NCBI RefSeq assembly: GCF_000150275.1
Contig: NW_002060946.1
Coordinates: forward strand, 3,491,454-3,555,453
Length of the DNA stretch: 64,000 bases
Direction of reading: 5' to 3'
DNA from: Trichoplax adhaerens
Taxonomy: Eukaryota; Animalia; Placozoa
Both the position numbers and the translations under genes were made by a program. The notes below the pieces were generated by a model. That model was not told where the DNA came from and searched no databases. It saw only the letters and a program-made list of their open reading frames with translations. Numbering within the stretch: the first letter of the stretch is position 1; every line of letters begins with the position of its first letter. Shown piece by piece: positions 14,899-64,000 of this stretch.

Positions 14899-15862
14899 AA
14901 GCAAATTGCAATTTTTTTCTAGCATTTCTCTTCTTTTCATGGCAGAAATGCCATCTTTCAAGATCAGTCTGGACTGGATTAGGATATACTGTAGACTACT
15001 CAGAGAAGTACAAGAGTACAGTAGAAGAATACGCATAGGCTTAAGCTAATTGCAATTATTTCTCTTGTCATCCATGCACAAAAATCCTTGTCTTACTCAG
15101 GGACGATTTCCTTTCAATGGCAGAAATCCTTGTCTTACTCAGGGATTTCTCTTCTTTTCATGGCAGGAATGCCATCTTTCAAGATCAGTCTGGACTGGAT
15201 TAGGATATACTGTAGACTACTCAGAGAAGTACAAGAGTACAGTAGAAGAATACGCATAGGCTTAAGCAAACTGCAATTTTTTTCCTGCATTTCTCTTGTG
15301 ATCCATGCACAAAATCCTTGTCTTACTCAGGGATGATCTCCTTTTAATGGCAGGAATCCTTGTCTTACTCAGGGATGATCTCCTTTTAATGGCAGGAATC
15401 CTTGTCTTACTCAGGGATGATCTCCTTTTAATGGCAGAAATCCTTGTCTTACTCAAAGATGATCTCCTTTCAATGGCAGCAATACCATCTTTCAAGATCA
15501 GTCTGGACTGGATTAGGATATACTGTAGACTACTCAGAGAAGTACAAGAGTACAGTGGAAGAATACGCATAGGCTTAAGCAAACTGCAATTTTTTTCCTG
15601 CATTTCTCTTGTGATCCATGCACAAAATCCTTGTCTTACTCAGGGATGATCTCCTTTTAATGGCAGGAATCCTTGTCTTACTCAGGGATGATCTCCTTTC
15701 AATGGCAGAAATCCTTGTCTTACTCAAAGATGATCTCCTTTCAATGGCAGCAATACCATCTTTCAAGATCAGTCTGGACTGGATTAGGATATACTGTAGA
15801 CTACTCAAAGAAGAAAGTCAGAGAAGTTCAAGAGTACAGTAGAAGAATACGCATAGGCTTCT
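14899..15862. repeat. Hierarchical tandem array: constant block of about 95 bp x4, separated by 2, 4 and 3 copies of a 42-bp subrepeat
   Basis: Block CCATCTTTCAAGATCAGTCTGGACTGGATT...CATAGGCTT starts at 14951, 15172, 15485 and 15756. Subrepeat AATCCTTGTCTTACTCAGGGATGATCTCCTTTTAATGGCAGG lies between blocks. Confidence 0.95.
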
Positions 15863-16587: not shown

Positions 16588-17766
16588 CCGATTGAGCGAG
16601 AGCAACGCCATCGAGGCTAAAATTCAATTACAAAGTCAAAATAAAATCAATCGTCCAATAGAATGAACTCAAAATGATTGCTATGTTGAGTATTTCCACG
16701 TAGCAAGTAGATACTGCTACTGGTTCAGTTATCATAGCCTAAAATAGAACTCGATCACCATCAATCTTGTTGATCGAGATGGGTCAACGAGGCAATGCAA
16801 TCCTCATCATCATACTGCCGTACCGATTGAGCGAGAGCAAGGCTAAAATTCAATTACAAAGTCAAAATAAAATCAATCGTCCAATAGAATGAACTCAAAA
16901 TGATTGCTAGGTTGAGTATTTCCACGTAGCAAGTAGATACTGCTACTGGTTCAGTTATCATAGCCTAAAATAGAACTCGATCACCATCAATCTTGTTGAT
17001 CGAGATGGGTCGACGAGGCAATGCAATCCTCATCATCATACTGCTGTACCGATTGAGCGAGAGCAACACCATCGAGGCTAAAATTCAATTACCAAGTCAA
17101 AATAAAATCAATCGTCAAATTGAATAAACTCAAATGATTGCTATGTTGAGTATTTCCACGTAGCAAGTAGATACTGCTACTGGTTTAGTTATCATAGCCT
17201 AAAATAGAACTCGATCACCATCAATCCTGTTGATCGAGATGGGTCGAAAAGGCAATGCAATCCTCATCATCATACTGCTGTACCGATTGAGCGAGAGCAA
17301 GGCTAAAATTCAATTACAAAGTCAAAATAAAATCAATCGTCCAATAGAATGAACTCAAAATGATTGCTAGGTTGAGTATTTCCACGTAGCAAGTAGATAC
17401 TGCTACTGGTTCAGTTATCATAGCCTAAAATAGAACTCGATCACCATCAATCCTGTTGATCGAGATGGGTCGAAAAGGCAATGCAATCCTCATCATCATA
17501 CTGCTGTACCGATTGAGCGAGAGCAAGGCTAAAATTCAATTACAAAGTCAAAATAAAATCAATCGTCAAATTGAATAAACTCAAAATGATTGCTAGGTTG
17601 AGTATTTCCACGTAGCAAGTAGATACTGCTACTGGTTCAGCTATCATAGCCTAAAATAGAATGTCCATCGAAAAGGAATCTTGAAAATCGCAACTCGATC
17701 ACCATCAATCATGATGATCGAGATGGGTCGACGTGGCAATGCAATCCTCATCATCATATTACTGTA
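16588..17766. repeat. Tandem array, 5 units of 226-235 bp (last unit longer)
   Basis: Units starting CCGATTGAGCGAGAGCAA at 16588, 16823, 17049, 17283 and 17509; near-identical. Each contains the inverted repeats GTAGCA/TGCTAC and CTCGATCA/TGATCGAG. Confidence 0.96.
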
Positions 17767-18318: not shown

Positions 18319-21300
18319 ATGAAGTTAATCAATCGCCAAAAGTGGATAGTAATTGTTTTACTTCTTGCTTGCACAAGCAATCGACGACATCATGTTCATG
18401 CAATGGATGGCCATGGCGATGATGATGCCAGCCAACAACATTCTAAAACGGTCGATAGGCACAATCAAGCAGCCGATGATAACCCTGCTGATGGTCAACA
18501 TCCATTTCTATCGCATCCAATCGATCACAAGGCAAAATCGACAGCTGATTCGCAGGATAACAACAACGACGAGAAACGACTTCAACATTTACAAGGCGAT
18601 AATAAGGTGGATCCACCATCCAAAAATGAGTTACCACTAGATGATAACGATATTCGAAAAGAAGTAGAAAGGAAGGAGAAGCAACCTCTAGCCGATACTA
18701 GTGTCAAACCTCATCCTCAATCCAAGGATGAGAATTCAAATGAAATGCAATCGAAAGACGAGCGATTCAAAAATGAGCAAGATAACCCTTCCAGTGATAA
18801 TAAGCAGAAAACAGCCCAACAGCATGATAACCCAGTCGATCAGAAGAATGCTCATCGCCTTGATTCTAACCATGCTAGCGATAGTGATGGCCAGCAGGAT
18901 CAACAGGAAGTTCAATCTCAATCCAAGGACAATCCAAAGGAACCGCAATCGAAAGACGAAGGACTAAAAAAAGTGGACCATGATAAGCCTTCCACTGATA
19001 ATAATGAGAAGAAAACAGCCCAACATCATGATAACCCAGTCGATCAGAAGAATACTCATCGTCCTGATTCTAACCAAGAAAGCGATGATGATGGTCAGCG
19101 GGATCAACACAAACTTCACTCTCAATCTAAGGATAATCCAAATGGACAACAATCCAAAGACGAAGGATTAAAAAAGGTTGACCAAGATCAACCTTCCGCT
19201 GATAATAATGAGAAGAAAACAGCCCAACATCATGATAACCCAGTCGATCAGAAGAATACTCATCGTCCTGATTCTAACCAAGCGAGCGATGATGATGGTC
19301 AGCGGGATCAACACAAACTTCACTCTCAATCCAAGGATAATCCAAATGGACAACAATCCAAAGACGAAGGATTAAAAAAGGTTGACCAAGATAAATCTTC
19401 TGATGATGACCAAAAGGAAACAACCCAACATCATGAAAATCTAGTTGATAATAGTATTCGTCGCTTTAATCCTCCGCAAGCTAGAAGTGATGATGGCCAA
19501 GAGCAACAACCGAGGAAAGCCAACAACAAAATACCGCCTAGTGCCAAGGAATACACTAATACTGATACAAAGAGTAATCAAGTGAAAAAGGACAACTCCA
19601 AATCGCCACCATCTTCTATTAACGCTTTTAAGGAAGGCCATGAGTGTGGACGTGATGCTAAACGTTTTTGCTCATCCGACGATAGGAATGCTTTGTCCTT
19701 GCTTGTATGCTTACAGACTGAACCTCGAAGGAATGTAAGTATTTTCTTAAATAAACTACTATCTTGCCAACAGTATACTCTACAGATTGAATTAGCATCC
19801 ATCAAAAAGGAAATCATTTCCGCTTTCCACTCATATCACATAAGTAATGCAGCCATCAGCCACGATCAGCATACCACTTGCACTAAGTAGATTGGGATAC
19901 AATCGTATCGTTGTTGATGGCTTGATCATTTCACCTTCTTAAACTTTTTTGCTATATCACTAATGTAAAGGACGCGAACTCGTACAAGAGTTCAATCGAG
20001 CTATTCAAGGATAGGATAAATTCATTTTTTGCCATGCTCTATATTCTACCACTTCGCCACGGAAAATGGAGTATAGACTGATATAGCAATTGACAAAGAG
20101 ATGACAAGAAATTGTGTTGGATAAAACCATATTAGATGACTTTAATCGATGTCGATAGTGCGTAATATCATAGACCTTGATCAAAATCCTATCTTTCACT
20201 AGCCAACTAACTATATTACACTAGTAGTAATACCTGTTATTCGCAAGTAAATCACTCTGCTGTACAAGGCACATCATCTTGAAAAATTTCCATTCTATCC
20301 AAAATAGAAAGTTATGTCATAATGCTGTGTAGTACAGCACAACTATTACTGCGATATATCGATCGTTTCGACGGATACACTTTTCATTTTACGCACTTAA
20401 CTTATTCCGCTACCAATGTCATTGATACAAAGATCCTCTTGAATATAAACATCATCATCGACTCTTCCTTTCCAAGTAGTAACAATTACGGTACATTATA
20501 TAATCGTAAAATAATTCCATTTGTATCTTCAATTTTCATGACAGTAGTAGACAATACAATTTCTTTTCGTTGACATTTCCATCTTGTACTATTCGTGCCT
20601 TATTTTGTAAACAAGAAGATCGAATTGAAATAATTATGAATGATTACAGTCTATCGCTTGGATACTGCAAACTGTGCACTACTCCCCCCATCTTTTTCAA
20701 TATAGTTACGGTACATTCATTATACGATCACGCAATAATTGACTAGTATCGTCAATTTTCATTTTTTTTTTACCAACAATTTCTTTTCCTTCACCTTTTT
20801 ATCATGTACTACTTAGGAGTAAATTCTATTGTACATTGAAGAATAGGATGAATGAATTTATTAATGATGATAGTCTACTACTTGTACTTTTTTAACAATA
20901 AATTACGCAACATTATGGCTATATCATTATGGGATAGCTTCGCTAGTATAGTCAACTTTCATTTCCATTACCAATTCCTTCTCGTTGATATTTCAATCTT
21001 GATGCCGATCGCTATCTTGTAGTGCTCATGTTTTAGTTGGAAAAGAAGAATACAAAGTGTAAACGATGATCGCTAATCACTAGGATACGATGAGAAGGAG
21101 CAATGGATCGTATACCCGAGCAATGTTCTCGCTTTTGACGTTGATGTGCACCAATTTCATCGACGCTTAAGATATTATGTTTACTAGGATAGTAATCACG
21201 ATTATACTGTAAGGAAGCCTATCCACATGAACTACTAAAAATTTCTAGTAGTCTATGCTATGCATACCTTGAGATCTTTAAAGTAGCTCTTACTACAATT

Positions 21301-30437: not shown

Positions 30438-31107
30438 GTATGGAAAGCAAATATGCCAAAGGCGTCTTGACGGCAGATAATAAACAGTATGATTGTTTGA
30501 TAAGCCATTGGGATTGTACGTATATTAATAAATAATAAAAAGGTTTAGTTGAGCTAAAAGCGGTCAATCGCTGCCATCATCTATGAGTACTGTATATCCA
30601 TTTTAGAAACGTATACCAGTTTGTTTTCGACTTGAGAGGCATTGAATAGCCCTCCACCAAGTTTCCCCTTACAAGTGGAAAGCATAAGTTTGATCGTATA
30701 CAGTAATGCAAGTTTTGAAATGGTCGTTGAAAAAATATTAGCCACTGTTCTGTATTCTGGTCAATCATTTCTGATGTATTGGAGACTGCTTGATTTTTGA
30801 TGAACTACACACTTGAGGTTCTACATGGCACAGTTGGATTAATTGAATTTGTGAGATTACAGAGAGAATGAAATTATTCTTACCGATCAATAAGACTGTA
30901 TTTGAATGGATAAGTTACAACATCCTGCTGATTTTGTTATTTTAGTGCAGTACATTTTTAGGCTACTGTACGTGATATATTTTATGGATGCATTGATAGA
31001 ATAGAATATTAAGCTAATGAGCTCAACAATGGTACCAAGGTGCACATTGACCAACGGTTGGTGAAGCACCAATGTGCATTATTGACGAGAGTCAATATTA
31101 TGGCCTA

Positions 31108-31888
31108 TTTAGCCACTAGTGAAAAATCGCTTGGACGAAAAGCTGCATTCATGGGCTATGTCAACAATCTTTCCATGACAATACCATTACGACATCCCAC
31201 CTAGGATTGAATATTTTCAAATTATGCAACCGATCGGATTTTCGGTTGTCTCTATCTAGAGGTAAAAATGAGGCATTTATTAACACATTGGTCTACTACT
31301 CATTTAGCCACTAGTGAAAAATCGCTTGGACGAAAAGCTGCATTCATGGGCTATTTAAATAATCTTTCCATGACAATACCATTACGACATCCCACATAGG
31401 ATTGAATATTTTCAAATTATGCAACCGATCGGATTTTCGGTTGTCTCTATCTAGAGGCAAAAATGAGGCATTTATCAACACATTGGTCTACTAGTCATTT
31501 AGCCACTAGTGAAAAATCGCTTGGACGAAAAGCTGCATTCATGGGCTATTTAAACAATCTTTCCATGACAATACCATTACGACATCCCACATAGGATTGA
31601 ATATTTTCAAATTATGCAACCGATCGGATTTTCGGTTGTCTCTATCTAGAGGCAAAAATGAGACATTTATTAAGACATTGGTCTACTAGTCATTTAGCCA
31701 CTAGTGAAAAATCGCTTGGACGAAAAGCTGCATTCATGGGCTATTTAAATAATCTTTCCATGACAATACCATTACGACATCCCACATAGGATTGAATATT
31801 TTCAAATTATGCAACCGATCGGATTTTCGGTTGTCTCTATCTAGAGGCAAAAATGAGACATTTATTAGCACATTGGTCAACTACTCAT
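31108..31888. repeat. Tandem array, 4 x 195 bp
   Basis: Units starting TTTAGCCACTAGTGAAAAATCGC at 31108, 31303, 31498 and 31693, with few substitutions; internal hairpin CAACCGA/TCGGTTG. Confidence 0.97.
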
Positions 31889-36028: not shown

Positions 36029-38341
36029 ATGGCGGAAGCAAGGCAAGCTGTTGCATTCCAATTTACAATCACCTCTAATGGGATTTTTATCGACTTCAAT
36101 CAAGTAGGAATCAATAATGCTATTCAAACAGTATTACACGCAATACGGCTGAAATGGCGCAACTTCCGTAATTCTCTACATAAGAGTGTATTTCCAAATT
36201 CTGCTAAATCGTATCTAATTATCGCGATGGTATTAGTTTTACTGCGCTATCTACAGTTTGGGCCGGTAAAATATCTCTTTCAATTAGAAGCTTACATCCC
36301 TACGCAGGATCCTCGAATTACCATCGCCACTCATGTTGTTATATTAGCAACGGTATTGTGGATCACCTTGGCTTATTTTAAGCGATACATGTTAAAAGTT
36401 TTGCTTATGTACAAGGGATGGATATTTGAGAGCGGAGGAAAGATCTCGCTCCAAACTAAAATTTGGTATGGCTTGATAAATATGTTGAAGTGGAAAGGAA
36501 AACTCCAGTTATTAAGCTATCAGTCTTCACTGCCACGATTGCCAGTCCCTTCTTTAGAATCAACTACCAAAAGATACCTCCAATCAGTACGTCCGTTAGT
36601 TAACGACGAAAAATATGACCGGATGGCCAAGCTGGCCAATGAATTCCAGAATGGTATTGGATGTAAACTCCAACGTTATCTAGTTCTTTATTCATGGTGG
36701 GCGAGTAACTATGTCTCTAGCTGGTGGGAAAATTATGTCTATTTACGGAGTCGTGAATCACTCCTCATTAATAGTAACTATTACATGATAGATGGAGCCA
36801 CTGAAGAAACCGTGACCAACAGACAAGCTGCTCGCGCAGCAAGCATAACAAGAAGTGTAATACAATATCGCCAAATGATAGACGATGAGAGCTTGGAACC
36901 ATTGATACTTCGGGATTCAATTCCGATGTGTTGTAAGCAACATCTTAGGCAAATGAATACTGCAAGATTACCCGGAAAGGAATTTGATAAGATTGCCCAT
37001 TACAGTTCAAGCATTTCTCGTCATATTGCCGTTCTTCATAAAGGTCGCTATTACAAGCTTGATTTGTATCGCGGTCCACGCTGGCTAAAATTAGTGGACC
37101 TAGAAAAGCAATTTCAGCGTATCATTGATGATGAAGAAGAACCACTACCGAGTGAATTACACTTGGCTGCGTTAACAGCCGTAGACAGGACTCGCTGGGC
37201 TACAATACGTGAAGAATACTTCTCAAACGGAATTAATAAGCAGTCTCTAGATGTAATCGAAAAATCTGCTTTTGTTCTTGTATTAGACGATACCGAACAA
37301 TTTTATCAAGAAAATGATCCTAGTAAGTTTAATTCATTTTGCAAAGCATGCCTTTGCGGTAACGGTTACAACAGATGGTTTGATAAATCAATGACTGCAA
37401 TCATTTATGCTAATGGACGATTTGGAGCGAATTTGGAGCACACATTTGCAGATGCACCAATATTTGGTCATCTACTTGAATATCTCATGACAAACGATGC
37501 ATCTCCAGGAAGATTTAAGCCGGATGGCCATTGTGATGGTGAATCCAGCGTGGACAATATTGGCCGTCCTACCCGATTGAAGTGGGATATTCCTTCTAAA
37601 TGTTGTGAAGAAATTGAAGATTGCGCCCAAATTGCAAAGTCGGCCATAAGTGATCTCGATCTTTATGTGCTAGATTTTACTGAATATGGCAAAGGATATA
37701 TGAAAACTTGTAAAGTTAGTCCTGATGGTTACATGCAAATGGCGTTACAATTGACCTACTATAGATTAAGTCGTCAATTTTGCTTAACCTACGAGTCAAG
37801 CATGACACGATTATACAGAGAAGGTAGGACTGAAACTGTTCGACCTGTTACTACGTTGTCTACAGAATTCGTTCACACTATGTGCGATAAAAAGAAAAGC
37901 AGCGCTGAAAAGCGTCAAGCTTTAAGGAATGCTTGTGAAAATCATGCTATGTTAGCAAAGGAAGCCATGTTGGGTTATGGGATCGATCGCCATCTGTTTT
38001 GCTTATATGTTGTATCAAAATATCTTAAACTCGATTCACCGTTTTTAAAAGAAGTATTAAGTGAACCTTGGCGCCTGTCTACTAGTCAAACCCCTCACAG
38101 GCAGACGAAATTTTGCAAAGATGATGATTACGATGCTTGCGCTAAAAAGTTATCTGCTGGTGGTGGATTTGGCCCAGTGGCAGACGACGGCTATGGCGTT
38201 TCTTACATTTTTACTGGCAATCGATATGTAGTCATTCATATTACATCAAAGAAATCCTGCAGAGGTACAGGTTCCGAAAAATTTGCTAAAATGTTGAGAA
38301 AAAGCCTACTAGATATGCGAAAAATCTTTCAAGATTCTTAA
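36029..38341 (+). CDS. CPT1: Carnitine O-palmitoyltransferase 1, copy 1 (intronless CDS, 770 aa)
   Basis: MAEARQAVAFQF N-terminus, two TM segments, LPRLPVP, WWENYVYL, NRWFDKS, catalytic EH(T)FADAP, TYESSMTR, GIDRHLF, WRLSTSQTP and GGGFGPVADDGYGVSY. Likely 5'UTR intron acceptor TTTTTTGTAG ending at 35971. Confidence 0.97.
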   Translation: MAEARQAVAFQFTITSNGIFIDFNQVGINNAIQTVLHAIRLKWRNFRNSLHKSVFPNSAKSYLIIAMVLVLLRYLQFGPVKYLFQLEAYIPTQDPRITIATHVVILATVLWITLAYFKRYMLKVLLMYKGWIFESGGKISLQTKIWYGLINMLKWKGKLQLLSYQSSLPRLPVPSLESTTKRYLQSVRPLVNDEKYDRMAKLANEFQNGIGCKLQRYLVLYSWWASNYVSSWWENYVYLRSRESLLINSNYYMIDGATEETVTNRQAARAASITRSVIQYRQMIDDESLEPLILRDSIPMCCKQHLRQMNTARLPGKEFDKIAHYSSSISRHIAVLHKGRYYKLDLYRGPRWLKLVDLEKQFQRIIDDEEEPLPSELHLAALTAVDRTRWATIREEYFSNGINKQSLDVIEKSAFVLVLDDTEQFYQENDPSKFNSFCKACLCGNGYNRWFDKSMTAIIYANGRFGANLEHTFADAPIFGHLLEYLMTNDASPGRFKPDGHCDGESSVDNIGRPTRLKWDIPSKCCEEIEDCAQIAKSAISDLDLYVLDFTEYGKGYMKTCKVSPDGYMQMALQLTYYRLSRQFCLTYESSMTRLYREGRTETVRPVTTLSTEFVHTMCDKKKSSAEKRQALRNACENHAMLAKEAMLGYGIDRHLFCLYVVSKYLKLDSPFLKEVLSEPWRLSTSQTPHRQTKFCKDDDYDACAKKLSAGGGFGPVADDGYGVSYIFTGNRYVVIHITSKKSCRGTGSEKFAKMLRKSLLDMRKIFQDS

Positions 38342-40432: not shown

Positions 40433-42245
40433 AATCCAATCATTTTTTTACAACTGCAGTTTACAGGCATGATGTTCTCATGACTTGAGGCCTGTTCTAA
40501 TTATATCAAGAAATCCTGGGTAGCTTGACTAATAACGGGTATACTTTTATCGCTCATTCTGGTGTAGGCGTCTAAAATAAGTGTCGGTTTATCATGGTTC
40601 AAGAGGATCATGATCGTGATTGTAGGTGAGCAGTCGTAAGCAAGCTGTTAATCCTATCTCGTACTAACTCCACTAAAGGAGTCATCATGCGATCATAAAT
40701 TGGTAGCATGCTTACGTGAAGATCAAGAGTTGTTATCTATGCTATATCTACAGTATGTCTTTATGTACATACTGTACTGTACAGTGGATATATCGGGGCT
40801 TTACTTACAGTATGTCATTCTTCAAGTTGATTTCTTGAACCATCAACTACAATACTGTGTTGTACAGTGTCGTATTTTCGCCTCCTCGCTGGCGATAAAC
40901 AATCCAATTACTCCTCCTTCTTTTATCATGCATATGAGTTGTTGACAAAATTAGCCATATTGTACTGTATTTGCATGACTATAGGTTTAACCTGGCTTTA
41001 ACTATGTTATTCACCGACTACAGCACCATACTGTACGGTGGAATTTCATTTCAATCTTTCCCACCCGATAAGTAATAAATAAATAACTAAAATAATTCTA
41101 TCATAAATAGTAAATAGTGCAGCACTGTCAATAATTAAATTACAAAACTGTACAGTACAATTCAGTATCGACGCATACTACGGATTGACGACCCAATTTG
41201 ACAACTCGTGAAGACCTTGGTACATGCGTACTGGCGGCAAAATGTCCATAGTACTGTACACTGTACACTGTACACTGTACAAACCACCCAGCCAATAACA
41301 CCGTTACCCTCCATATATCACATGCCACCCATTTAAGCCAGGGCAACATCATACGGCCATTGAAAAAAAACTCATTGGCGTCTTGGACAGTGAAAGTTGC
41401 ATTAGCCAGCATAGGACTAGGCAAAGAAAAACGTGAATCTTAACCTATATCTGTTATGATAGCATTCAGCTTATTAACAAAGTCAAGGTATGTAATAAAA
41501 GTCAGTAATGTAACAGTTTATTGAATTTCTTTGGAGGACTTGCAAATGTGTGATGATTGGCAAAAAGTGGATGTTTATCGTTATGCGCTAGGCAAATTGT
41601 CAGTGGGGTCCACCGTTAAAGTACACAATATTGAGTCACGTTAGCAATTGATAGGATACTGATATATAAAATTGACTTATCCAATATCTTAGACTGTACT
41701 CAGTACATAAAATGAACATGATAAATGGTAAAAATGGAATTAAAACGAGTTTGGACATTTTGAAGTTCAATCTTCAATCTTGAGTTCAAGGTAAAGAACA
41801 AAAACAGACCCCAGTGGGTACTGCTGATACACTCGTTCTGTACTGTACTGTACTTTAAAAAAGCGCAATGAACTTCGGTGACACTAAGGAAAATAAACTG
41901 TATAGGCTAAATCAAGTCCTGCCTGTCCAGATCGATTTTGAACACGAGTGTTGACAAATTGGAACTTTCAATTTTTCACGTCATCTTGCCATCCAAGTTA
42001 ATCGCGCTGTACACTACGTTGTACGTAGTCGACAAACTTTCTATACTGTAACTTGATTGAAGAATAATCATCATACTACACCACAATAGCAGTCAGCGTA
42101 TATCGGTCTTTCACTACTATTGTGCATATTTTCGGTAATTGTCTGTTGTCCTTCTCGGTACTGGAAACAGTCTTATGCTTACCGTTTATTCCATTTCATA
42201 TACTGTACAATTTCATTCATACTCGTGATTGAATAACAAAATTAT

Positions 42246-43028: not shown

Positions 43029-43510
43029 CCTCATGTTGGTAATGCCCTAAATTCGATAGAATAATCCAACAGCTAGTAACAGAGTCAAACAACATCATAT
43101 AGTCAATGCAGTAACTACAAATATACCTAATTGTCAAAATAATCGCAAGATTAGCATACACCGTAGCATGCGAACTAATGGAATGTTTCTCTTTCATAAA
43201 TTAGCTAGAGAGAAATAAGGAAAAGAAATCAACACTAATCTTGAATAGTAGTAAAGAATCAGAAACACCCAACGTGGTTAAGGTTAACAAAGGAAATCGT
43301 AGCTTATCTTCTTCGTATACTGTACAGTATAGGACACTGAATTTCGCACAAGCGCTGGTTCGTCAATTGGCTTATTCAGAAATTTACACGGCTTCTTAAC
43401 TTAATTTATATTCCAGCCTCCTTTGCTGTACAGTATACGTCTATATCCCCCTTAAAAAGAAAATTAAATTCGCTACTTGAGTATTGTTTCCATTTCTGAA
43501 CTTATCGAAG

Positions 43511-45814
43511 ATGGCTGAAGCTAGACAAGCTGTAGCTTTTCAATTTGCAGTTACCGATGAAGGTGTGGTCGTCGACTTTAACAAAGCCGCAATTTCCAAC
43601 GTTGTATCCGTAATTCGCCACTCTGTACGGTTACGATTACATCGTCTGTATAACACCTTGTTAAAGAATATTTTTCCAAACACTACCCAATCATATATTC
43701 TAATAGTTATAACGCTATTATTGGCGCGTTATCTAGAAGCTGGTCCTTCTGTCATACTATGGAATATTGGCACTGAACTTAATAGTATTAATCATAATAT
43801 TACTGGTTTACTTTATGTTGGTTTATTGTCTATAATTATATGGTTGACATTAGCCTATATCGAACGCTACACATTGAAGCTATTGCTAATGTACAAAGGG
43901 TGGATGTGGGATGCTCCTAAGAAGACCTCGTGGAAAACGAAAATATGGTATACGCTCATGAAGCTTTTATGCGCTCGTAAACATTTACGTCTTTACAGCT
44001 ATCAGGCCTCCATACCAAAGCTATCCGTACCGTCACTGCAATCTATCTGCAACAAATACTTGAGTTCGGTTAAGCCCCTGATGAATGATAAAGAATACTC
44101 TGAAATGGAGCGGTTGGTAGATCAATTCCGTAATGGAATTGGTAAAAGATTACATCGCTATACTGTATTATATTCTTGGTGGGCGACCAACTATGTTAGT
44201 GACTGGTGGGAGAAATATGTTTACCTGAAATGTCGCGGCTCTTTGATGATCAACAGCAATTACTATGCTGTTGATTCGGCGGTTTCTGTGCCAGTAACTT
44301 CTATTCAAGCTGCTAGAGCTGCTAGTGTTGCCCACAGCCTTCTTTTATTTCGGCAATATGTAGATGACGAAACTTTGGAACCTCTCGTACTCCGTGATAT
44401 TATTCCAACATGTTCTAAACAGTATTCAAGAATGTGGAATACTACGCGGATTCCTGGACGCACGTGTGACTACATTGCACATTTTGATTCATCCGTCTCT
44501 AGGCACATTGCTGTATACCATCGTGGGCGCTTTTTTAAGGTTAATGTGTATGATGGCGATAAGCTTCTAAGCCCTACTGAATTAGAACAGCAGTTTCAAA
44601 CGATTGTAGACGATTCAAGTGAGCCTCAACCTGGCGAACTCCATTTGCCAGCACTAACAGCTCAAGAGCGCTATTATTGGGCAGTAGCACGAAGATCTTA
44701 CTTTGCTGCTGGCGTTAACAAACAATCGTTGGATACTATCGAAAAATCTGCTTTTGTTGTCATTCTGGACGATACCTCACAGCATTACAGCGATTCGGAT
44801 CCTTCCTTATTGAATTCCCTATGTAAGTCAGCACTGCATGGAAACGGAAACAATAGATGGTTTGATAAATCAGTCAACTTGATCATTTACGCCAATGGCA
44901 GGATGGCCGGCAACTTTGAGCATTCTATAGCAGATGCGCCTGTTTTTGGCCATCCCTACGAGTTTGCAATGATTAATGATTCTATCATTCCAGGACGATA
45001 TGATAGTGATGGGCATTGCTCTGGTAAAATCGTCAACAAGATAACTCCACCGAAACGGTTACAATGGAATCTTTCCGACGATTGTATTGAAAAAATCAAT
45101 GAATCATATGTGTTAGGTTGCAAAATGATTGATGATCTTGATTTATATGTCTTAAATTTTCAAGAATATGGAAAAGACTTCATGAAAAAATGTCGTGTCA
45201 GTCCTGATGCTTATTTACAGATGGCTATGCAACTGACATATTACAAGTGTAGCAATCGATTTTGCTTGACGTATGAATCTTCTATGACACGATTATTCCG
45301 AGAAGGTCGCACAGAAACCGTACGCACTGTTACCGACTTATCATGCAAATTTGTGCTTGCAATGCTGGATAAAACTAAAACAAATAAAGAACGTCTAGAA
45401 TTACTTCGTCAGGCCGGCAGCCTCCATCAAAAGACGTACAGACAAGCAATGTGTGGTCAAGGCATTGATCGTCCTCTTTTTTGCATGTACGTGATATCCC
45501 AGTACCTTAAAGTCGACTCACCATTCCTGAAGAAAGTTTTAAGCGAGCCTTGGCAACTATCAACTAGTCAAACACCCCATCAGCAAACAAAGTACGCTGG
45601 CGACAAGTATGATGCAAAGATAGTATCAGCAGGTGGCGGTTTCGGACCAGTTGCTGATGATGGTTATGGTGTTTCTTACATTGTCACTGGTGAAAGCTGT
45701 TTAATGATCCATATAACTGCCAAAAATTCTTGTCCTACAACCAGTGCGAAGATGTTTGCGGACACTTTGCAAGAATCTTTGATACAGATGAGAGATTTTT
45801 TTTCTGCAGCTTGA
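43511..45814 (+). CDS. CPT1: Carnitine O-palmitoyltransferase 1, copy 2 (intronless CDS, 767 aa)
   Basis: True ATG at 43511 (MAEARQAVAFQF); the ORF track starts earlier at a TTG. Same motif set as copy 1: EHSIADAP, TYESSMTR, WQLSTSQTP, GGGFGPVADDGYGVSY. Confidence 0.96.
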   Translation: MAEARQAVAFQFAVTDEGVVVDFNKAAISNVVSVIRHSVRLRLHRLYNTLLKNIFPNTTQSYILIVITLLLARYLEAGPSVILWNIGTELNSINHNITGLLYVGLLSIIIWLTLAYIERYTLKLLLMYKGWMWDAPKKTSWKTKIWYTLMKLLCARKHLRLYSYQASIPKLSVPSLQSICNKYLSSVKPLMNDKEYSEMERLVDQFRNGIGKRLHRYTVLYSWWATNYVSDWWEKYVYLKCRGSLMINSNYYAVDSAVSVPVTSIQAARAASVAHSLLLFRQYVDDETLEPLVLRDIIPTCSKQYSRMWNTTRIPGRTCDYIAHFDSSVSRHIAVYHRGRFFKVNVYDGDKLLSPTELEQQFQTIVDDSSEPQPGELHLPALTAQERYYWAVARRSYFAAGVNKQSLDTIEKSAFVVILDDTSQHYSDSDPSLLNSLCKSALHGNGNNRWFDKSVNLIIYANGRMAGNFEHSIADAPVFGHPYEFAMINDSIIPGRYDSDGHCSGKIVNKITPPKRLQWNLSDDCIEKINESYVLGCKMIDDLDLYVLNFQEYGKDFMKKCRVSPDAYLQMAMQLTYYKCSNRFCLTYESSMTRLFREGRTETVRTVTDLSCKFVLAMLDKTKTNKERLELLRQAGSLHQKTYRQAMCGQGIDRPLFCMYVISQYLKVDSPFLKKVLSEPWQLSTSQTPHQQTKYAGDKYDAKIVSAGGGFGPVADDGYGVSYIVTGESCLMIHITAKNSCPTTSAKMFADTLQESLIQMRDFFSAA

Positions 45815-56300: not shown

Positions 56301-59300
56301 ACTAGCTTATTTATAAGATCTTTCAAGTTGAATATTACTAACAACAATTATGCGTATACGATACCTTGTCTTAACATCTCAATAAAAGCGTCTGCTTGGG
56401 TATTACTAATTCCGGTTTTTTCTGAAGAGTTATCAATGATATAGCAGAGTAGCTGATGTATCACTTCTACTGCTATATCACCTAGGCCATCTTCGTTGCT
56501 ACCAACATCTGATGATATAACAAATTTGGTAAAAGACAGATTAAATTGTAAATATATTGTTAGCATGTAACTCTACTTGGGTAATTTTACTGATAACTGG
56601 CGATTCATCCAACTACTATTGCTATATGCAAATTATACAATTTCTACACGTTGTATTACGCAACTCTTCAATGCTAAGTTGTGAAATAAATTTAAAGAAA
56701 GGTACTATCATATGCAGATTTAAAGTAACACAGACTCGAAAAGCTCATATACACGTATCATCTTACCGGAATCAATGTAAGACTGTAACAGTTCTGGTAA
56801 TTTTTCCTTTAAAAACCTTTCCGCTAAAATAAATTAGAAGGGATAATATTACTGTATCATTCCATACTAAACCATTCACTTAAACGACACAAAAAAAAAT
56901 CTTAACCCTAACAGATAAGCAATATTATTATTATCTGTAGACTATACCTTGTGTTTTCAGTTCAATATTAGATGCATGGATTAAGCCCAACCCTATTACA
57001 ATCTATTTTAATTACAGTTTTAATAATTAATATTGATACTATGACAATCGTGTTTAAGAAATCAAACATTTATCTTGCAGACATAAAAGTAGCCAAGATT
57101 AGTGTAAGGTACCTCTTGAATTTTGCTTAGTTTCAAAACTTGGCTTATTCGGGATAATAACTGAGGTGACGGTTGAAGGCTCTGAAAGTAATGAACATGA
57201 TAATTTAGAATGGGAATAAAAATGTTGTAGTATGATATTCAAATGTTCATTAATCCAGAATGTAGATTTTCAATCGGATTCAAGTCAATTTTGATAGTTA
57301 ATACTTTTTTCAATCCATCATCCTTCAATCCAGTTTTGGCACATACGTCTATAACGTTGCAACGTACAGTTTAATTTATCATTTATTAATGCTCACCTTT
57401 TGTTTGGGCAAAGGTTCATCTATGGCGTAGCTTAAGATAGTTGCTACATTAGCTTTTGTAACTAAACCGCTACACTCTTGCGATAACAGCTGGATCTAGA
57501 TAAAGATACACGAAGATAACATTATGCCACTAGAAATAACGGTAGTTCTTTATCATGTATCGTCCTGGTTAAAAGGTCGATTCCTTGTACTGAATTTTAA
57601 ATAAAACGTCTAATTGTACTTGTCAGTATGTATCAGTTCAAATCAGTCAACATCAGGCGGCCACTTAATGTGAAAAGTAGATCATGGCTTGATGAGCAAT
57701 TGCCAGCTTGGAATAACAAATTTGCGTGCTAACATCACTCTTTATTGTTGGTATTTCTTTTATTGCTGACCTCTACGCTGTAGTTTTACTTACAGCTTAG
57801 TTCTATTTTTTAGCGACTTAGAACATTACATGTTCACATAATAGCTATTGTATAGTACAGCGGAGGATAAGAGTGTACAGTAAATAGCACGGTTGATTGC
57901 TGATACAATTGGTGTAGACGACTACTAAGCTGTTATGTATAGCACTACTGTGCCGTCAACTATTACTATTGCAGCCGAGAGGTACTCATACATACAATAC
58001 TACAATTTACTCACGTAAATTTGGCAACAGTTTTGATAGAACTGCAACACAAAGACAAAAGATACCCAGCTAGTTTTACTGTATAACATAATAATTTTAT
58101 GATTTCTACTCTGCTTCCCTTCATTTCGACGTGATTCATTACTGATTTACTGTACAGTATCCCACTCGTTGCAGGCTTGCAATTGGTGATTGATGAGAAA
58201 ATGGAATGTTCAAATTGATAGAGAAGTATTGACTAAGGACAGCATTATACGTTACATACTATAAAATATAGCATACCTGATAGAAATCTTTACCGCTACC
58301 TTTATTATCCGCGTTGAAATCAATTTGTGAGAATAAAACACGGTACAAATGTTTCTCCGCTTCGGTGCCATAGCGTTCAACAAGCTATAGATACATATTA
58401 AGAAAACAGAAGAGAAATTGAGATGTAATATTGTATGTCCAGATTCAGTTACGCATCATTTTTTTGCTTCTCCACTAGGCAATACTGTAGTAACAACAGT
58501 ATTCCTGGGACAGTCTAGATATTAAGAGGATTTCACAATTTCATTCTCATACTACCCAGTGATGGCGTGATAGCGTACAAGTAGTAATATTTAGCTGCAA
58601 GATTTGTGCCATGAAATACTAATAATTATTACATAGAGAATTGCTGTAATTATAGTCTCCATTGCCTATCTTGGTAGCCGGCATTGAACGAGTGACTTTG
58701 AAGATTGAATCGATTACTACAGTATGAAGTTGCAGTTACAGAATTACGTACAGTACTGTACTCTGGTTCTAGTGTCTACAGTACTGTACAACTACGGACA
58801 CTCAAAGTGTACTGTACACTGTACAGTACTGTACGCGTACTGTACGCCCAGTACGGCCAGTCTACAACACGACTGGATTTGAACATACCGTGCCCTGTAC
58901 AGTACACTATAGTTCAGTACTAAATCCATAAGCTTCATGCCTAAAATGGGTCCGCAAAAATGCTGGAAAAAAACGGAATAGCTAGCGATGATCAAGTGTA
59001 TAACATGTATGAAGAAATGACTTTTGGCATCCACTATTCTTTGACTCTACAGTAATAACAAAACAAAGATGAACACAAATTCTTGGCAGTAGAATCGCTG
59101 TTTCCCTACTAATAATATAGCTACGGTTTTCTTAATGTCAGGCCTCGGATTTGAACTCACTTGATTCACAGGATATATATTCTCATGTACTGTACAGTAT
59201 GTGCACTTTACTTCAAAGCTGTGAACAAAACAATATACAATAGACAGGAACAGTATAGTATGTATGTGTAGGAATCATTGACATTAAGAGATCGCAGAGA

Positions 59301-60356
59301 ATCTTGAACGATAAAATCTATTTGAAGTTACATTATGTGGGGGATAGACATGTTGTAATATACATATATATACGTCGCCAAGAAGATAAGTGTCAAAAGT
59401 GGTTCATTCACCAAAATTTCAATCAACTATACAGTACAGTACTGTGTAGCATGGACTACTCAATCTTACGGTAAAATTGAGTCATCCATGTGTGTGTAGT
59501 GTCTTGAAGTTAGCAGAGCCGTAGCTGTTTTCAAGAATCAAAATACGGCAGATAGGAATAAGCATCAAGATACGCGTGGTTGTACTACTCTATCTTGGCA
59601 TAGCGTAAAGAAGTATAATACTCATCTAACCTAAAGAAGTAAATCGTTTGTAACCATCACCATTGCAATAACTGACAGTAAGCTATCCTCAAGATTGATG
59701 ATTAGACTATGATTGCCACTTCTAAACACTACGAAACGTACACCACACAAGACAATAAACGGACCACTACAACAAGGTTGGCAAAGTTACGTACGGCAGT
59801 GCAATTGAGCTATCTTTATTATATCGTCGTATAAACGAATAACTCTCTAATCTAACCAACCTACACTTTGATCTTACTGCACAATTGGAATTGAAAAGAT
59901 GGTCTATTGCCTATTACAAGCATATCAATCGAATATTGGGGTATAAAGGCCTTTGAACAAATGAGACAAAATTTGAATGCACGCAAGTACTCAACACTGT
60001 ACCGTGTATATTGTATGTCCTATCGAAAATGTAGAATGTTTGTATGCATAAAAGTCAAATTAGGAAGCATTAGAGTAAAGTTAATGAACCTAGAATAGGC
60101 TGTAGTTGACAGAATGAAGCTATCTTCAATCCAAGAATGTAATACCGTTTATTGGTATTGGTAAGTTTGCATTTTCCAGTCAAAAATCATGCAAGTTCAA
60201 GTCTGTACTTTCACGCTTTAACGAATCTATGGTAAGATAGTAAGTAGACCGTACCTGAGCTAATTCAAGTGTGTGCGACTTGGCAGTTTTCTTATTTAAA
60301 TTAGTTACCAAATGGGTAATTTGTGAAAGTGCTAAGGACAGTGGATCCGTGTCCAC
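47360..60356 (-). CDS. CNOT1: CCR4-NOT scaffold subunit 1, multi-exon; apparent start codon is GTG
   Basis: First coding exon 60356-60255 [34 protein letters not shown]. Exon 58384-58277 [23 protein letters not shown]...SGKDFYQ. Large exon 55741-53614 with [20 protein letters not shown] and [11 protein letters not shown]-terminal [36 protein letters not shown] and LFESVARSC. Stop 47362-47360. Confidence 0.96.
58749..58920. repeat. Cluster of TA-delimited CAG/CTG/CACTG modules (ACAGT-type simple repeat) in a CNOT1 intron
   Basis: For example, 58810-58844 reads TA-CTG-TA-CACTG-TA-CAG-TA-CTG-TA-CGCG-TA-CTG-TA. Confidence 0.85.
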
Positions 60357-60423
60357 GACAAATGTCTAAAGGGAGTTTTATCACATTAATCCACTTTGAT
60401 CCGTTGAACTCGATTGTAGTCAG

Positions 60424-60757
60424 TACAGTCATGGACTTCTACTGTACAGTACAGTAACTGTAATTGGGTAGTAAACGTGTCGACTTGGGTGTGGTTTACG
60501 ATACTGTGAGCCAAACTTTTCACTGCGTAGTGGCCTGTACAGCATACAGTACTGTGTTTTCCACACACTGCGTGTACTGTACTGTACAGTACATTACCAT
60601 ATCCAGCATTACTGTACTGTAGTAGAAATTGCTGGTAGTACGGTAGAGTACTGTACTGTACAGTGTACAGTACAGTACTGAAAGCGTTGTCACTCTTCTC
60701 TTCCATTTTGTATTGTAATTACAGTACTGTACAGTACAGTACTGCACCGTGTACAGT
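60424..60757. repeat. Dense cluster of TA-delimited modules just upstream of the first CNOT1 coding exon
   Basis: For example, 60639-60677 reads TA-CGG-TA-GAG-TA-CTG-TA-CTG-TA-CAGTG-TA-CAG-TA-CAG-TA. Confidence 0.85.
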
Positions 60758-60797
60758 GAAAAGTCTTCTGCTCCTAGTTTTGCCAACCAATACTGTC

Positions 60798-60950
60798 CAG
60801 TAGGCCCAGCCATAATAACCCCGATTACTCAGATTAGACCTGACTCAGACACTCAGCGTTAATAGCTTTGACAATAATGTACTGTATCATCGTTTAGGCT
60901 ATTTACGCTGAGTATCTGAGAAATCGGGGTTATTATGGCTGGGCCTACTG
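60798..60950. mobile_element. Tc1/mariner-type MITE, copy 1 (153 bp)
   Basis: TIR CAGTAGGCCCAGCCATAATAACCCCGATT... / ...AATCGGGGTTATTATGGCTGGGCCTACTG; right flank TA (left flank TC); nearly fully palindromic; no coding capacity. Confidence 0.8.
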
Positions 60951-61144
60951 TACAGTATCATTACTCATGCAATTCAAAAAGTCTTCTGCTCCTGGTTTTG
61001 CCAACCAATACTGTACAGTGTACAGTAATACGCAATCTGAGAAATCGGGGTTATTATGGCTGGGTCTACAGTGTACAGTACTGTATCCATTATTCATGCA
61101 TTTCAAAAAGTCTTCTGCTCCTGGTTTTGCCAACCAATACTGTA

Positions 61145-61292
61145 CAGTAAGCCCAGCCATAGTAACCCCGATTACTCAGATCAGACCTGACTCAGATACT
61201 CAGCGTTAATAGCTTTGACAATAATGTATCATCATTTAAGCTATTTACGCTGAGTATCTGAGAAATCGGGATTATTATGGCTGGGCCTACTG
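61145..61292. mobile_element. Tc1/mariner-type MITE, copy 2 (148 bp)
   Basis: TA at 61143-61144 and 61293-61294 flank CAGTA...TACTG TIRs of about 37 bp. Confidence 0.83.
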
Positions 61293-61483
61293 TACAGTAT
61301 CATTACTCATGCAATTCAAAAAGTCTTCTGCTCCTGGTTTTGCCAACCAATACTGTACAGTGTACAGTAATACGCAATCTGAGAAATCGGGGTTATTATG
61401 GCTGGGCCTACAGTGTACTGTATGACCATTATTCATGCATTTCAAAAAGTCTTCTGCTCCTGGTTTTGCCAACCAATACTGTA

Positions 61484-61631
61484 CAGTAAGCCCAGCCATA
61501 ATAACCCCGATTACTCAGATTAGACCTGACTCAGATACTCAGCGTTAATAGCTTTGACAATAATGTATCATCGTTTAAGCTATTTACGCTGAGTATCTGA
61601 GTAATCGGGGTTATTATGGCTGGGCCTACTG
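61484..61631. mobile_element. Tc1/mariner-type MITE, copy 3 (148 bp)
   Basis: TA at 61482-61483 and 61632-61633; 37-bp TIR with one mismatch; inner arms ACTCAGCGT.AATAGCTT / AAGCTATT.ACGCTGAGT. Confidence 0.83.
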
Positions 61632-62545
61632 TACTCTACAGTATCATTATTTATGCATTTCAAGAAGTTCATGGCCCTGTGTACTGTACAGTACAGTACA
61701 ATACGCCAACATGCATGATGATGACTGCACTGGAATAAAAGCGTACAGTATTAATCAGCCGTGCCAAATGACAAAACTACTGCCAATATTAATTAATTTC
61801 AATTTCAATCTGGAATTTTATTTGATAAATCAATTGGATGGTTTTACTCTACAGTATCTCACAATTTAGGAAAATTTTCTCAATCTGATTCACATCGAAA
61901 TCTTCAAGCCTTCAATCGAATTTTTCTAATCTCCTTTTCATTCATGAATATGTTTCTAATCAATAGGGTTGCTGCAAGTGTTTACTATACGGTTGTTCGT
62001 CAGAAATCAATTTCAATTGAATTCATTCACTATACTGTACAGCGCAGTGTACAATGGACTTTACTGTGTTTCGGCAATCAGCAGTTGGCAATGGATGAGG
62101 TACTGCACAGCAAGTCTCCATTTAACGTCAATTTGGTCGAGTCCCTAATTATAGTCCCTGATTATACAGTATATTACGTGTATAACATAGACATTACATA
62201 GATTGCATTACGTATATACTGTGTATATTATAGCACAGTAGTTCATTACTTCATTCATCCTGATTGTAAATTCTAAATTTTGAATAGGTAAAGTGTATAT
62301 CCATATGCTTTATACATCGCCGTACGTTACGGCAAATAGTATAACATAGATATAAAAAAAATATATATATATATATAGCGAATAGCTACGGCACAGGTAG
62401 ATAGCTGTATATTACGTAATATGCATGCCCATTGCGCCAATTTCTAGAATTGTCCTAGGAATTTCTCTGCACAAAACCAAAATAATGAGCGTAACACTGG
62501 CTGCAACGAAACTGCAAATATCTGCAGCTATTTTTTATTTTGCAG

Positions 62546-62740
62546 CAATGGCTAACTACAGAGTTGAAAACTCGACTCGAAAAAGCGAAAGAGAGCCTGT
62601 TTGGAAATTTGTTCGTGGCTGATGCTTGTCAGTTGTCACAGAGATCATTGATTGGAGATCTCGATGATGTGATTGCGACCAAGCGTAAAGCAGCAGTCGG
62701 CACTAGTACATTATTGGAAAGGATTGCAGACGGACGATAG
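62546..62740 (+). other. Possible terminal coding exon of an unidentified gene
   Basis: Strong acceptor TTTTTTATTTTGCAG ending at 62545, then 64 open codons (QWLTTELKTRLEKAKESLFGNLF...IADGR*). No homology recognised and no upstream exons established. Confidence 0.25.
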
Positions 62741-62908
62741 CATTACTGTACCACTCCTTTGCTCAACTATCCATAATAGAAAGAGCAAATATGAATATGT
62801 ATTTATTCGGGATTGCACTCATACCCATTTTTTAACCCGCTAATGTGCAGGGCATGTGCTACTTGCTGAGTCCAGAACGTATCCGTATTTTGCAGCACAC
62901 TGCAAGAT

Positions 62909-63092
62909 ACTGTACTGTACAGTGTCCAATGTGCACACCACGGTCACTACAGTAGTGTCGAGGTTGATACTTGGACTGCATTACTACTACTGTACTGAGG
63001 GGTAGTCAATCCCGTTGGCACAGTACAGTACGGTACAGTGTACAGTGTACAGTATTTACATCCTGTCAGAGGAGTACTGTAACTGTACTGTA
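62909..63092. repeat. Cluster of TA-delimited modules
   Basis: 63024-63054 reads TA-CAG-TA-CGG-TA-CAGTG-TA-CAGTG-TA-CAG-TA. Confidence 0.85.
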
Positions 63093-64000
63093 TCAACATG
63101 AAGGAACTCAACAGTGAGCGAGCGAACCGAACCTTAAGGGGAGGCTGCGACGAGTGAATTTCTTCAAAAGGGGCAGAAAAAACGTGTACTGTATATATAG
63201 TCGTCAACAGGTTTCTTGGACTACTGTATTCATACTTTGATACGGTAGTCATCATTGCAAAGGCTAGGCAAGATACGATCACTTCTTACAACATTAACTA
63301 TCCATTCTTCTAGCTTTCTATACTAGTACCACATGGACAAGGAAGATTGATTGCAAAGGGTGAAGTACAACAAGTAGCCTTTCCCTTTTGCGGTTTAGCT
63401 CGCTAGCGATAGATTGATAACTCTCTGTTCCAAGCAAGCACTACTGCCGCTGACAACCGTAGACTAACTATATGGTTTGAAGCGTTTGAACCTTGACCGC
63501 CAGTCATTCACTATAGCTATTGCACTCTTCTCCACAGCTATCCTACCGATGGATTGCAAGATAAGGTTAAAATTTGATTTGACAAGAATTAATGTATTAT
63601 ATTATAATTCCAAGATTGTGAATAAATGTTGGATAATTTCATATGTGCATGTGGCAAATGAAGCTTCAATTATCTTTGACATGAATATCTATCCTTTCGC
63701 CCGCGCTACACAATAAAATGCATAATCTCAATCTGATAGACTACTGTAAGACAATCAACTAATTACAGTGCTACTAAGGTTATCCTATGTGATCGCGCGC
63801 TCGTTATGTTACCAACTTAGGATTTAATGGACTTATTTATACGCGTGCTGCAGCTGTAAAATAGTGTCTACTTCACAACTTCGATCCTCACAAGATTAAA
63901 GTACATACTCTCTTGTCATCGTTTTGTATTTCGTCAACGATTAACCATGGTATTTGCAGGGGCATGCTCCGATTAATTACAATGAGTAGCAACAGTCATA

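Follow-up and report, generated by a model that had tools for sequence, protein, structure and literature searches.

TACWGTA heptamers of the Trichoplax ACAGT repeat as candidate excision footprints at TA sites

Since its description in 2010, the ACAGT repeat of Trichoplax has lacked an explanation, and it now appears in models of placozoan three-dimensional genome folding. We analyzed it in a 64,000-nt stretch of Trichoplax adhaerens DNA (contig NW_002060946.1, positions 3,491,454 to 3,555,453 of the forward strand; hereafter the window, whose coordinates are used throughout), centering on the interval 60424-60757, in which heptamer positions delimit eight short TA(CWGTA)n arrays (W, A or T) and the spacers between them. 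The unit of the repeat is the heptamer TACWGTA, and we observed new units as exact 5-bp gains in which a single TA, at a site with no repeat, became TA-CWG-TA. An insertional origin of the 5-bp unit is very probable. Excision of a Tc1/mariner-type transposon, the origin put forward in a first-pass annotation made from the letters of the window alone, is the best explanation of the insertions that we can offer, albeit an unproven one, and we put its chances at about even. The same balance applies to the composite account, in which the 'microsatellite' was built by insertion events with slippage as a minor contributor, because that account includes the transposon step. If excision scars do write the repeat, it would form a readable record of mobile-element activity in a genome thought to be nearly free of active transposons.

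The enriched heptamer and its gain at single TA sites

The repeat was described by Wang et al. in 2010 (PMC2871265), who found that ACAGT accounts for 78% of Trichoplax pentanucleotide repeats and that 54% of ACAGT repeats lie at most 1 kb upstream of genes, ribosomal and kinase genes being enriched; the abundance and gene association mentioned in the first-pass annotation are published. That study considered it a tandem repeat that might serve as a binding site, without offering an origin. In the window, which has a composition of 35% G+C, we counted 69 copies of TACAGTA and 88 of TACTGTA, 157 in all, compared with a mean of 13.35 (standard deviation 3.45, largest value 20) in dinucleotide-preserving shuffles, none of 100 of which reached the observed number. 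The excess claimed in the first-pass annotation is therefore real, and its by-eye expectation of about 15 copies per 64 kb was correct. When all 16 words of the form xACAGTy were compared, the combination of x = T and y = A gave 157 observed versus 13.5 expected, and the remaining 15 combinations were mostly near expectation (at most ~2-fold above it), except for TACAGTG (30 versus 8.7), which is part of the 7-bp modules discussed below. With the same exception, single-substitution variants of the heptamer occurred at 1 to 2.5 times expectation, and the central base was A or T only, C and G being found there 14 times each versus 157. The enriched unit is the whole heptamer T-ACWGT-A, and all seven of its positions are needed. 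Among words of the form TA-NNN-TA, CTG (12.8-fold) and CAG (10.4-fold) stood alone, with CGG next at 3.0-fold, and among 5-nt cores between two TAs CAGTG and CACTG ranked first, at 16- to 21-fold. Single units make up 104 of the 157 heptamers, and lone heptamers lacking a preceding G or a following C were found 44 times versus 9.3 expected, an enrichment of about 5-fold. One-off variants show an excess of ~161, compared with ~143 for intact words, which tilts toward transitions (90 over 7 words versus 71 over 13 words for the rest); the size of this variant pool and its transition weighting are as expected from steady production and neutral decay.

Five independent changes of TA to TA-CWG-TA were found at repeat-free sites. 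Each adds exactly 5 bp and keeps all flanking bases, the insert lying between two copies of a formerly single TA, with a CAG or CTG core whose centre has been resolved either way. Three of the five lie inside copies of a miniature inverted-repeat transposable element (MITE) that adjoins the interval, and their ancestral state is fixed by the family consensus or by tandem sister copies; the other two are polymorphic between strains. In MITE copy A of the window, CTGTA has been gained at AATAATGTA^TCATCG (60882-60886); neither the family consensus nor sister copies B and C have it, and an unrelated MITE copy (locus L016) carries CAGTA at the very same TA. A further copy (locus L023) has gained CAGTA at CATTA^TTC, where no C or G lies nearby; a P-nucleotide (hairpin) source for CAG at naive sites was rejected on this ground, as the flank offers no C or G to copy. 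Across the alignment of the MITE family, three of the four insertions of at least 2 bp are CWGTA, and apart from one 16-bp partial duplication no filler-type insertion was seen. The tandem sister copies differ also by two in-array modules.

For the strain comparison, we used contigs from four public runs, which carry two organism labels, come from four studies and differ by ~1%, on positions 58300-63300, a region in which the contigs were swamped by cross-mapping arrays. Of the strain indels of at least 3 bp, three of the six listed were TACAG (places 58717, 58769 and 60862), and the other three listed were a TA-repeat change, a TGTA tandem duplication and ATT. Two of the three listed TACAG polymorphisms have no adjoining identical unit. 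At place 58769, a TA without repeat (58770-58771, ggttcTAgtgtc; ggttcTAgtg) reads TA-CAG-TA in two runs: X1 shows it at full depth, and X7 at half depth, on one 147-base contig. At place 60862, a TA inside the MITE (60863-60864, GCGTTAA^TAGC) is followed by TACAG in one contig of run X1; it could be allelic or derive from a copy elsewhere, and is a gain relative to the family consensus either way. At place 58717, a lone TACAGTA (58718-58724) is joined by another TACAG unit in runs X2, X5 and X7, and here, beside an identical unit, slippage and a second scar look alike. Whether lone gains occur at repeat-free sites had been posed as a check in the first-pass annotation, which had also named gains solely by duplication of adjacent units as the pattern that would speak for slippage; lone gains exist, strain polymorphisms among them.

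To describe the arrays we combined the window with 40 loci, 183 kb altogether, leaving aside loci L009-L011, which overlap the window, and L041, from another sample; most of the 40 loci were chosen via a 29-mer or the MITE, both treated below, and are array-rich. Unless noted otherwise, array statistics refer to this set, and genome searches to an assembly of 105.6 Mb in 1,414 contigs. Counted by length from one unit to seven, the 828 TA(CWGTA)n runs number 575, 151, 57, 26, 11, 5 and 3, respectively, so that 69% of runs are single units and the longest pure run has seven. The bases on either side of isolated heptamers are similar to those around TAs in general. The central letter is A in 613 units and T in 645; adjacent units share it in 250 of 430 cases (58%, p = 4e-4) and differ in 42%, and switches of both kinds are equally frequent (92 and 88). 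Modules lying between canonical units were CAG (142), CTG (137), CACTG (33) and CAGTG (22), none other exceeding 8. Between 41 and 57% of run ends carry no partial unit, a boundary measure that decayed units and 7-bp modules blur. A further recurring module is the variant TA-CGG-TA or TA-CCG-TA (36 + 46 copies, and 3 times expectation in the window), seen for instance at 60639-60648 and 63029-63035 of the window, in locus L005 and on a placozoan-like contig (L046:107-113).

Four arrays that the first-pass annotation had divided into TA-delimited modules parse exactly as it proposed. The array at 60639-60677 reads TA-CGG-TA-GAG-TA-CTG-TA-CTG-TA-CAGTG-TA-CAG-TA-CAG-TA; that at 63024-63054 reads TA-CAG-TA-CGG-TA-CAGTG-TA-CAGTG-TA-CAG-TA; that at 58810-58844, inside a 5′ intron of CNOT1, reads TA-CTG-TA-CACTG-TA-CAG-TA-CTG-TA-CGCG-TA-CTG-TA; and that at 41252-41279 reads TA-CTG-TA-(CACTG-TA)x3, equivalent to (ACTGTAC)x4.1. 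The words cluster in non-coding DNA around gene starts. Along the window the heptamers show over-dispersion, their mean being 2.45 units per kb and their variance 16.3, with peaks at 39-47 kb and 58-63 kb. High densities occur in the region upstream of CNOT1 and in its 5′ intron, in the spacer separating two CPT1 genes and also in a convergent 3′-3′ spacer at 46.0-47.8 kb. Long open frames are poor in them, the four longest holding a single heptamer at 44161, in the second CPT1 gene. The interval 60424-60757 itself adjoins the start of CNOT1 (minus strand, start ~60367) on its upstream side, and the central letter showed no strand bias relative to CNOT1 transcription (12 versus 10). A genome search with positions 60380-60760 gave only array-driven matches at 70-80%; the spacers between the arrays are not repeated, and the idea that they are mobile units was rejected, as each is unique in the genome. 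The two CPT1 (carnitine O-palmitoyltransferase 1) genes are intronless, stand in tandem on the plus strand (36029-38341 and 43484-45814) and are 56% identical, and the 5-kb spacer between them is rich in TACWGTA.

Excision of a TA-specific transposon as a proposed source of the 5-bp unit

We propose the following model for the 5-bp unit. A Tc1/mariner element with CAG...CTG ends, inserted with duplication of its TA target, would be cut out with a 3-nt stagger; the two CAG overhangs would then pair with a central A·A mismatch, which would be resolved randomly to A or T. The product is TA-CWG-TA in place of TA, a gain of 5 bp that is itself observed. Each scar adds a TA, so that scars could stack. 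Scars ordered CTG-TA-CAG would create the palindrome CTGTACAG, the preferred landing site of the hAT-like MITE, a preference shown by target duplications. On excision, the MITE would in turn leave behind a doubled CTGTACAG lacking one base, CTGTACA-S-TGTACAG (S, C or G), which corresponds to the 7-bp module and to the centre of the 29-mer. Slippage would add a minority of same-orientation neighbours; we estimate that it is the source of ~16% of adjacent pairs, if slipped copies are identical and independent events agree in 50% of cases.

The nearest known counterpart is Sleeping Beauty, whose canonical excision footprints are TACAGTA and TACTGTA (10.1101/659086). The words of Trichoplax agree with these and other Tc1-like footprints in all seven letters, in a centre that is either A or T, in the gain of 5 bp and in the duplicated TA. 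Unlike them, the putative scars of Trichoplax are stacked and clustered far beyond reports for any host, and in this genome no donor element or active transposase was found.

Several results weigh against the model. First, 18% of units adjoin an existing run, though runs contain only 4.4% of TAs. The first-pass annotation had likened the arrays to a tape on which successive footprints are recorded; near-random orientation within arrays agrees with that image, but stacking exceeds even targeting of TAs several-fold, so that the tape model needs a preference for scar TAs or local hopping. Second, no pair of terminal inverted repeats (TIRs) of the form CAG...CTG flanked by TA was found in the 183 kb (~0.2% of the genome), apart from the hAT MITE when mis-parsed. 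Third, a genome-wide six-frame search with hidden Markov models gave four weak Tc3-HTH matches, all TIR-less, and no TA-anchored inverted ends were found around any Tc1, pogo or DDE_3 match. Since the gains are polymorphic among strains only ~1% apart, the agent should be recent, and its absence is awkward. Fourth, the non-canonical Sleeping Beauty scar words TACATA, TATGTA, TACGTA, TACTA and TAGTA showed no clear excess, against a high background. Fifth, all five naive-site gains lie 7 to ~100 bp from existing arrays, so that they may have been copied from a nearby template, and the change at 58769 may be a gain or a loss. Lastly, the gene association (PMC2871265) and the recovery of the motif by a model trained on Micro-C data (10.1101/2024.11.14.623548) let selection explain part of the abundance.

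The search for a donor gave little else. Among words recurring after TACAG in the 183 kb, only the hAT MITE surfaced, and the expectation of the first-pass annotation that the enriched cores would match TIR ends was not borne out: in this limited search we found neither a TA-flanked, CAG-ended TIR family nor a TIR-bearing Tc1, mariner or pogo transposase gene. The genome-wide search for a mariner domain was also negative, a null that shows little because no control genome gave a match either. One DDE_3 frame (L042) and three pogo-like frames (L043-L045) were recovered, all open, single-copy and TIR-less. The L042 gene (L042:886-1968; G000:C1409:3537586-3538668) encodes a Tc1/IS630-like protein of 361 aa with HTH_28 and DDE_3 domains, for which no match was found among solved structures; it is 100% identical in Trichoplax sp. 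H2 and has a 54% identical orthologue on a placozoan-like metagenome contig. Its first catalytic aspartate is replaced by alanine, as in the 54% orthologue, and a 34% relative retains the DDE triad. This gene looks like a domesticated transposase, and the replaced aspartate ruled it out as the agent. In L043, an open pogo/Fot-like frame of 550 aa lies between TA-CAGTA... at 400 and ...TACTG-TA at 2798 (L043:400-2804, ~2.4 kb); the similarity of the two ends fades after 5-9 bases, and the probability of such a pair by chance was estimated at roughly 10%. The missing transposase is a sharp, testable question in its own right.

The hAT-like MITE and the 7-bp module

The MITE next to the interval is a foldback element found in at least 60 places in the genome. 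Copy A of the window spans 60801-60947, with termini TAGGCCCAGCC...GGCTGGGCCTA and a target duplication at 60793-60800 (CTGTCCAG) and 60948-60955 (CTGTACAG). It belongs to a 339-bp unit present in 2.6 tandem copies (60759-61634), which comprise three MITE copies and solo TIRs and differ by three 5-bp modules. Because ...CTGTACAG-TA-GGCCC stands before nearly every MITE end, TA + CAGTAGG is a tempting parse, and the first-pass annotation had described the element as CAGT-ended and TA-flanked. It is neither, as the apparent CAGT end belongs to the target CTGTACAG and the duplication is 8 bp long. Direct, non-palindromic 8-bp duplications rule out the parse TA + CAGT...: exact copies of CTGTATAT (L012), ATGTCCAT (L027) and TTGTACAT (L028), all three outside arrays, stand on both sides of MITE copies, as do CTGTACAT (L026), GTGTACAG (L018) and GTGTGCAG (L033). 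Exact 8-mers were found at 14 of 28 MITE ends, compared with 5 of 28 for a control 8-mer.

Elements of the hAT superfamily (Ac/Ds, hobo, Hermes) duplicate 8 bp of target, favor targets of the form nTnnnnAn and leave footprints in which a base is lost or complemented. Of the 28 MITE targets, 19 fit nTnnnnAn, and the termini are TAG...CTA, of which TAGGC matches four of the five positions of YARNG, the hAT terminal consensus. Taken with the 8-bp duplication, this partial target fit and these termini suggest that the MITE is of the hAT superfamily. Five matches to the hAT dimerisation domain, in open frames of 261-687 aa, are present in the genome. The footprint form of the 15-mer described below is also of the Ac/Ds type, whereas the extreme preference for one palindromic 8-mer within a repeat and the many half-elements that end at internal TAs set this MITE apart from hAT elements. 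The preferred target is the palindrome CTGTACAG, which is made wherever a CTG unit is followed by a CAG unit; by landing in this array palindrome, the MITE exploits the arrays and does not make them.

Half-copies of the MITE, 63-178 bp long, were seen in L014, L015, L017, L018, L026, L027, L028 and L033 (near position 1500). Each retains an exact 8-bp duplication, and its inner end always lies directly past an internal TA; two of these TAs have also received 5-bp gains. The half-elements suggest cryptic ends or half-excision by the transposase. At the left end of the MITE in L013 (~1490-1506), TACAG stands between the target copy ATGTACTG and the terminus, with GA for the expected TA. It may represent one more scar at the terminal TA, which a point change then altered.

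Positions 60649-60677, the greater part of the mixed array described above, form a perfect odd palindrome of 29 nt, TACTGTACTGTACA-G-TGTACAGTACAGTA, the centre of which is the 15-mer CTGTACA-G-TGTACAG. The exact 29-mer has 74 copies in the genome (39 forward and 35 reverse) with unrelated flanks, and the reversed control has none. Around TACASTGTA the flanking units are strongly oriented, the left flank being CTG in 65 cases and CAG in 12 and the right flank CAG in 62 and CTG in 16; where both sides are flanked, 41 of 55 read CTGTACA-S-TGTACAG, versus 25% expected (p = 2e-14). In hAT excision, the flank is nicked one base in from the element and forms a hairpin, so that two target copies minus one base are a standard footprint. 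On these flank statistics and this chemistry, the 7-bp module TA-CASTG-TA is probably a hAT excision footprint, made of two copies of CTGTACAG with one base lost or complemented, although a 7-bp tandem duplication of other origin would look identical. The first-pass annotation had ascribed module identity to the end sequence of the transposon family; the 7-bp module is better read as hAT target duplications minus one base. Repetition of the module gives (ACTGTAC)4 at 41253.

Alternative explanations and related systems

Of the rival accounts of the repeat, the one that fares best, which we nonetheless consider unlikely, is that TACWGTA is a selected cis-element: a placozoan promoter, insulator or loop-anchor factor would bind it as a palindrome, and selection for numerous copies close to genes would account for its abundance, by whatever mutation the copies arise. 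The upstream position of 54% of ACAGT repeats (PMC2871265), the recovery of ACAGT from Micro-C data (10.1101/2024.11.14.623548), the sharp definition of the heptamer and an enrichment common to two placozoan-like contigs with unalignable flanks all speak for it. It gives no account of new copies arising as 5-bp insertions at TA, and the pool of one-off variants, with its transition bias, matches neutral decay. The words also fill the convergent 3′-3′ spacer at 46.0-47.8 kb and the 5′ intron, and a single dimer is unlikely to read 7-bp and 9-bp palindromes both. Selection of this kind is compatible with later co-option of words that arose in another way.

Somewhat less probable is templated break repair, in which breaks at or close to TA, in DNA rich in arrays and palindromes, would be mended by polymerase-theta-type end joining or by template switching. 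Such repair would prime on the TA of a nearby TACWGTA, copy five bases and re-anneal on the next TA, spreading arrays locally without a transposon. The five naive gains lie close to arrays (7-100 bp), clustering is strong and the search for a transposon agent was negative; of the three TAs hit inside the MITE, two lie near its foldback centre, and half-elements end at both. Repair of this type usually deletes, and its fillers vary in length, whereas the observed gains are exactly 5 bp with no loss of flank. Lone heptamers are ~5-fold enriched even in array-poor parts of the window, with ordinary TA flanks, and the MITE alignment, the 16-bp partial duplication aside, is free of filler-type insertions.

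Still more doubtful is a derivation of both modules from hAT footprints alone, whereby MITE cycles at CTGTACAG would leave two targets trimmed by 1 nt (+7) or by 3 nt (+5). Targeting of CTGTACAG by the MITE is seen, the 15-mer rule fits the 7-bp modules, hAT-type transposase frames are present and CTGTACA joined to GTACAG does yield a gain of 5. A CAG at the naive site CATTA^TTC is impossible by this route, as no C or G lies nearby; gains of 6 and 8 (TACATGTA and TACAGCTGTA) are expected to be common and were found 12 times and once, respectively; and the centre letters of the 5-bp unit follow no flank rule. The hAT footprint reading stands for the 7-bp module only.

Slippage of an (ACAGT)n microsatellite, with central point mutations mimicking orientation switches and GT slippage making the 7-mers, is largely refuted as the main origin and has very little probability left: the reverse-complement equivalence by which an apparent switch is a single base change, the strain polymorphism at 58717 that duplicates an adjoining identical unit and the modest same-orientation excess (58%, p = 4e-4) speak for it, whereas near-homogeneous arrays are expected and 42% of neighbours differ, a centre confined to A and T (C and G 14 each versus 157) is not a mutational pattern, runs reach at most 7 units and 575 of 828 are single units, on which slippage cannot act, and gains at naive sites bring bases absent locally. 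The ACAGT arrays thus show neither the unit homogeneity nor the array length of a slippage microsatellite.

Compared with the (ACAGT)n of Wang et al. 2010 (PMC2871265), the feature, the genome and the near-gene position are the same, but what we describe consists mostly of single heptamers and short stacks of mixed orientation that arose by insertion. Chromatin work has met the same words. A Micro-C-trained model (10.1101/2024.11.14.623548) recovers a repeating ACAGT in Trichoplax and a repeating ACGG motif said to be of a transposon, and Kim et al. 2025 (PMC12221973) tie loop anchors to 'Mutator' TIRs at placozoan housekeeping promoters. Both studies share with ours housekeeping promoters such as that of CNOT1, transposon ends and short motifs; unlike ours, they address three-dimensional contacts rather than origin, and they give no sequence to compare with the MITE. 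Going by this literature, the heptamers may later have acquired roles as chromatin or promoter signals.

Two contigs from other samples carry the same words. One (L041, a Logan contig) encodes a 76%-identical CPT1 orthologue and has 7 heptamers in 2.9 kb of flanks that cannot be aligned to the window; the other (L046) holds TA-CAG-TA-CAGTG-TA, TA-CAG-TA-CAG-TA and TA-CGG-TA-CAG-TA. From their composition, word content and orthology we take both to be from other placozoans, so that the process, or the selection pressure, is seemingly not confined to this genome. A broader and more speculative account, which we hold to be unlikely, is that a TA-specific cut-and-paste system, perhaps of very low copy number, lost from current assemblies or run by a TIR-less pogo-like gene, has acted across placozoan lineages and left ~10^5 scars, that CTGTACAG became a landing pad for the hAT-like MITE family, and that scars and MITE ends were co-opted as a promoter and loop-anchor code of housekeeping genes. 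If this were true, a single mutational history would lie behind the main 'microsatellite', the main MITE family and the three-dimensional promoter hubs.

Transposons that target or seed microsatellites include elements without long terminal repeats, mini-me and micron. As in those cases, a repeat and a mobile element are tied together here through target choice; unlike them, the Trichoplax repeat itself seems to be written by excision scars. We know of no earlier description of a repeat written in this way, and a literature search found none. Such an origin, if true, would provide a concrete route from transposition to new regulatory words and to new sites at which other elements land. It could account for the clustering of transposon ends at housekeeping promoters, and it would mean that mutation, besides selection, can enrich motifs at promoters.

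Elsewhere in the window, a 523-aa open frame at 18319-19890 has an internal 204-bp tandem repeat of 3.6 copies and no Pfam match. Tandem repeats at 94-97% identity occupy 16588-17661, 31107-31888 and 15082-15754, with units of 226/460, 195 and 313 bp, respectively. Some of these units carry one lone TACAGTA in each copy, so those words are older than the duplications.

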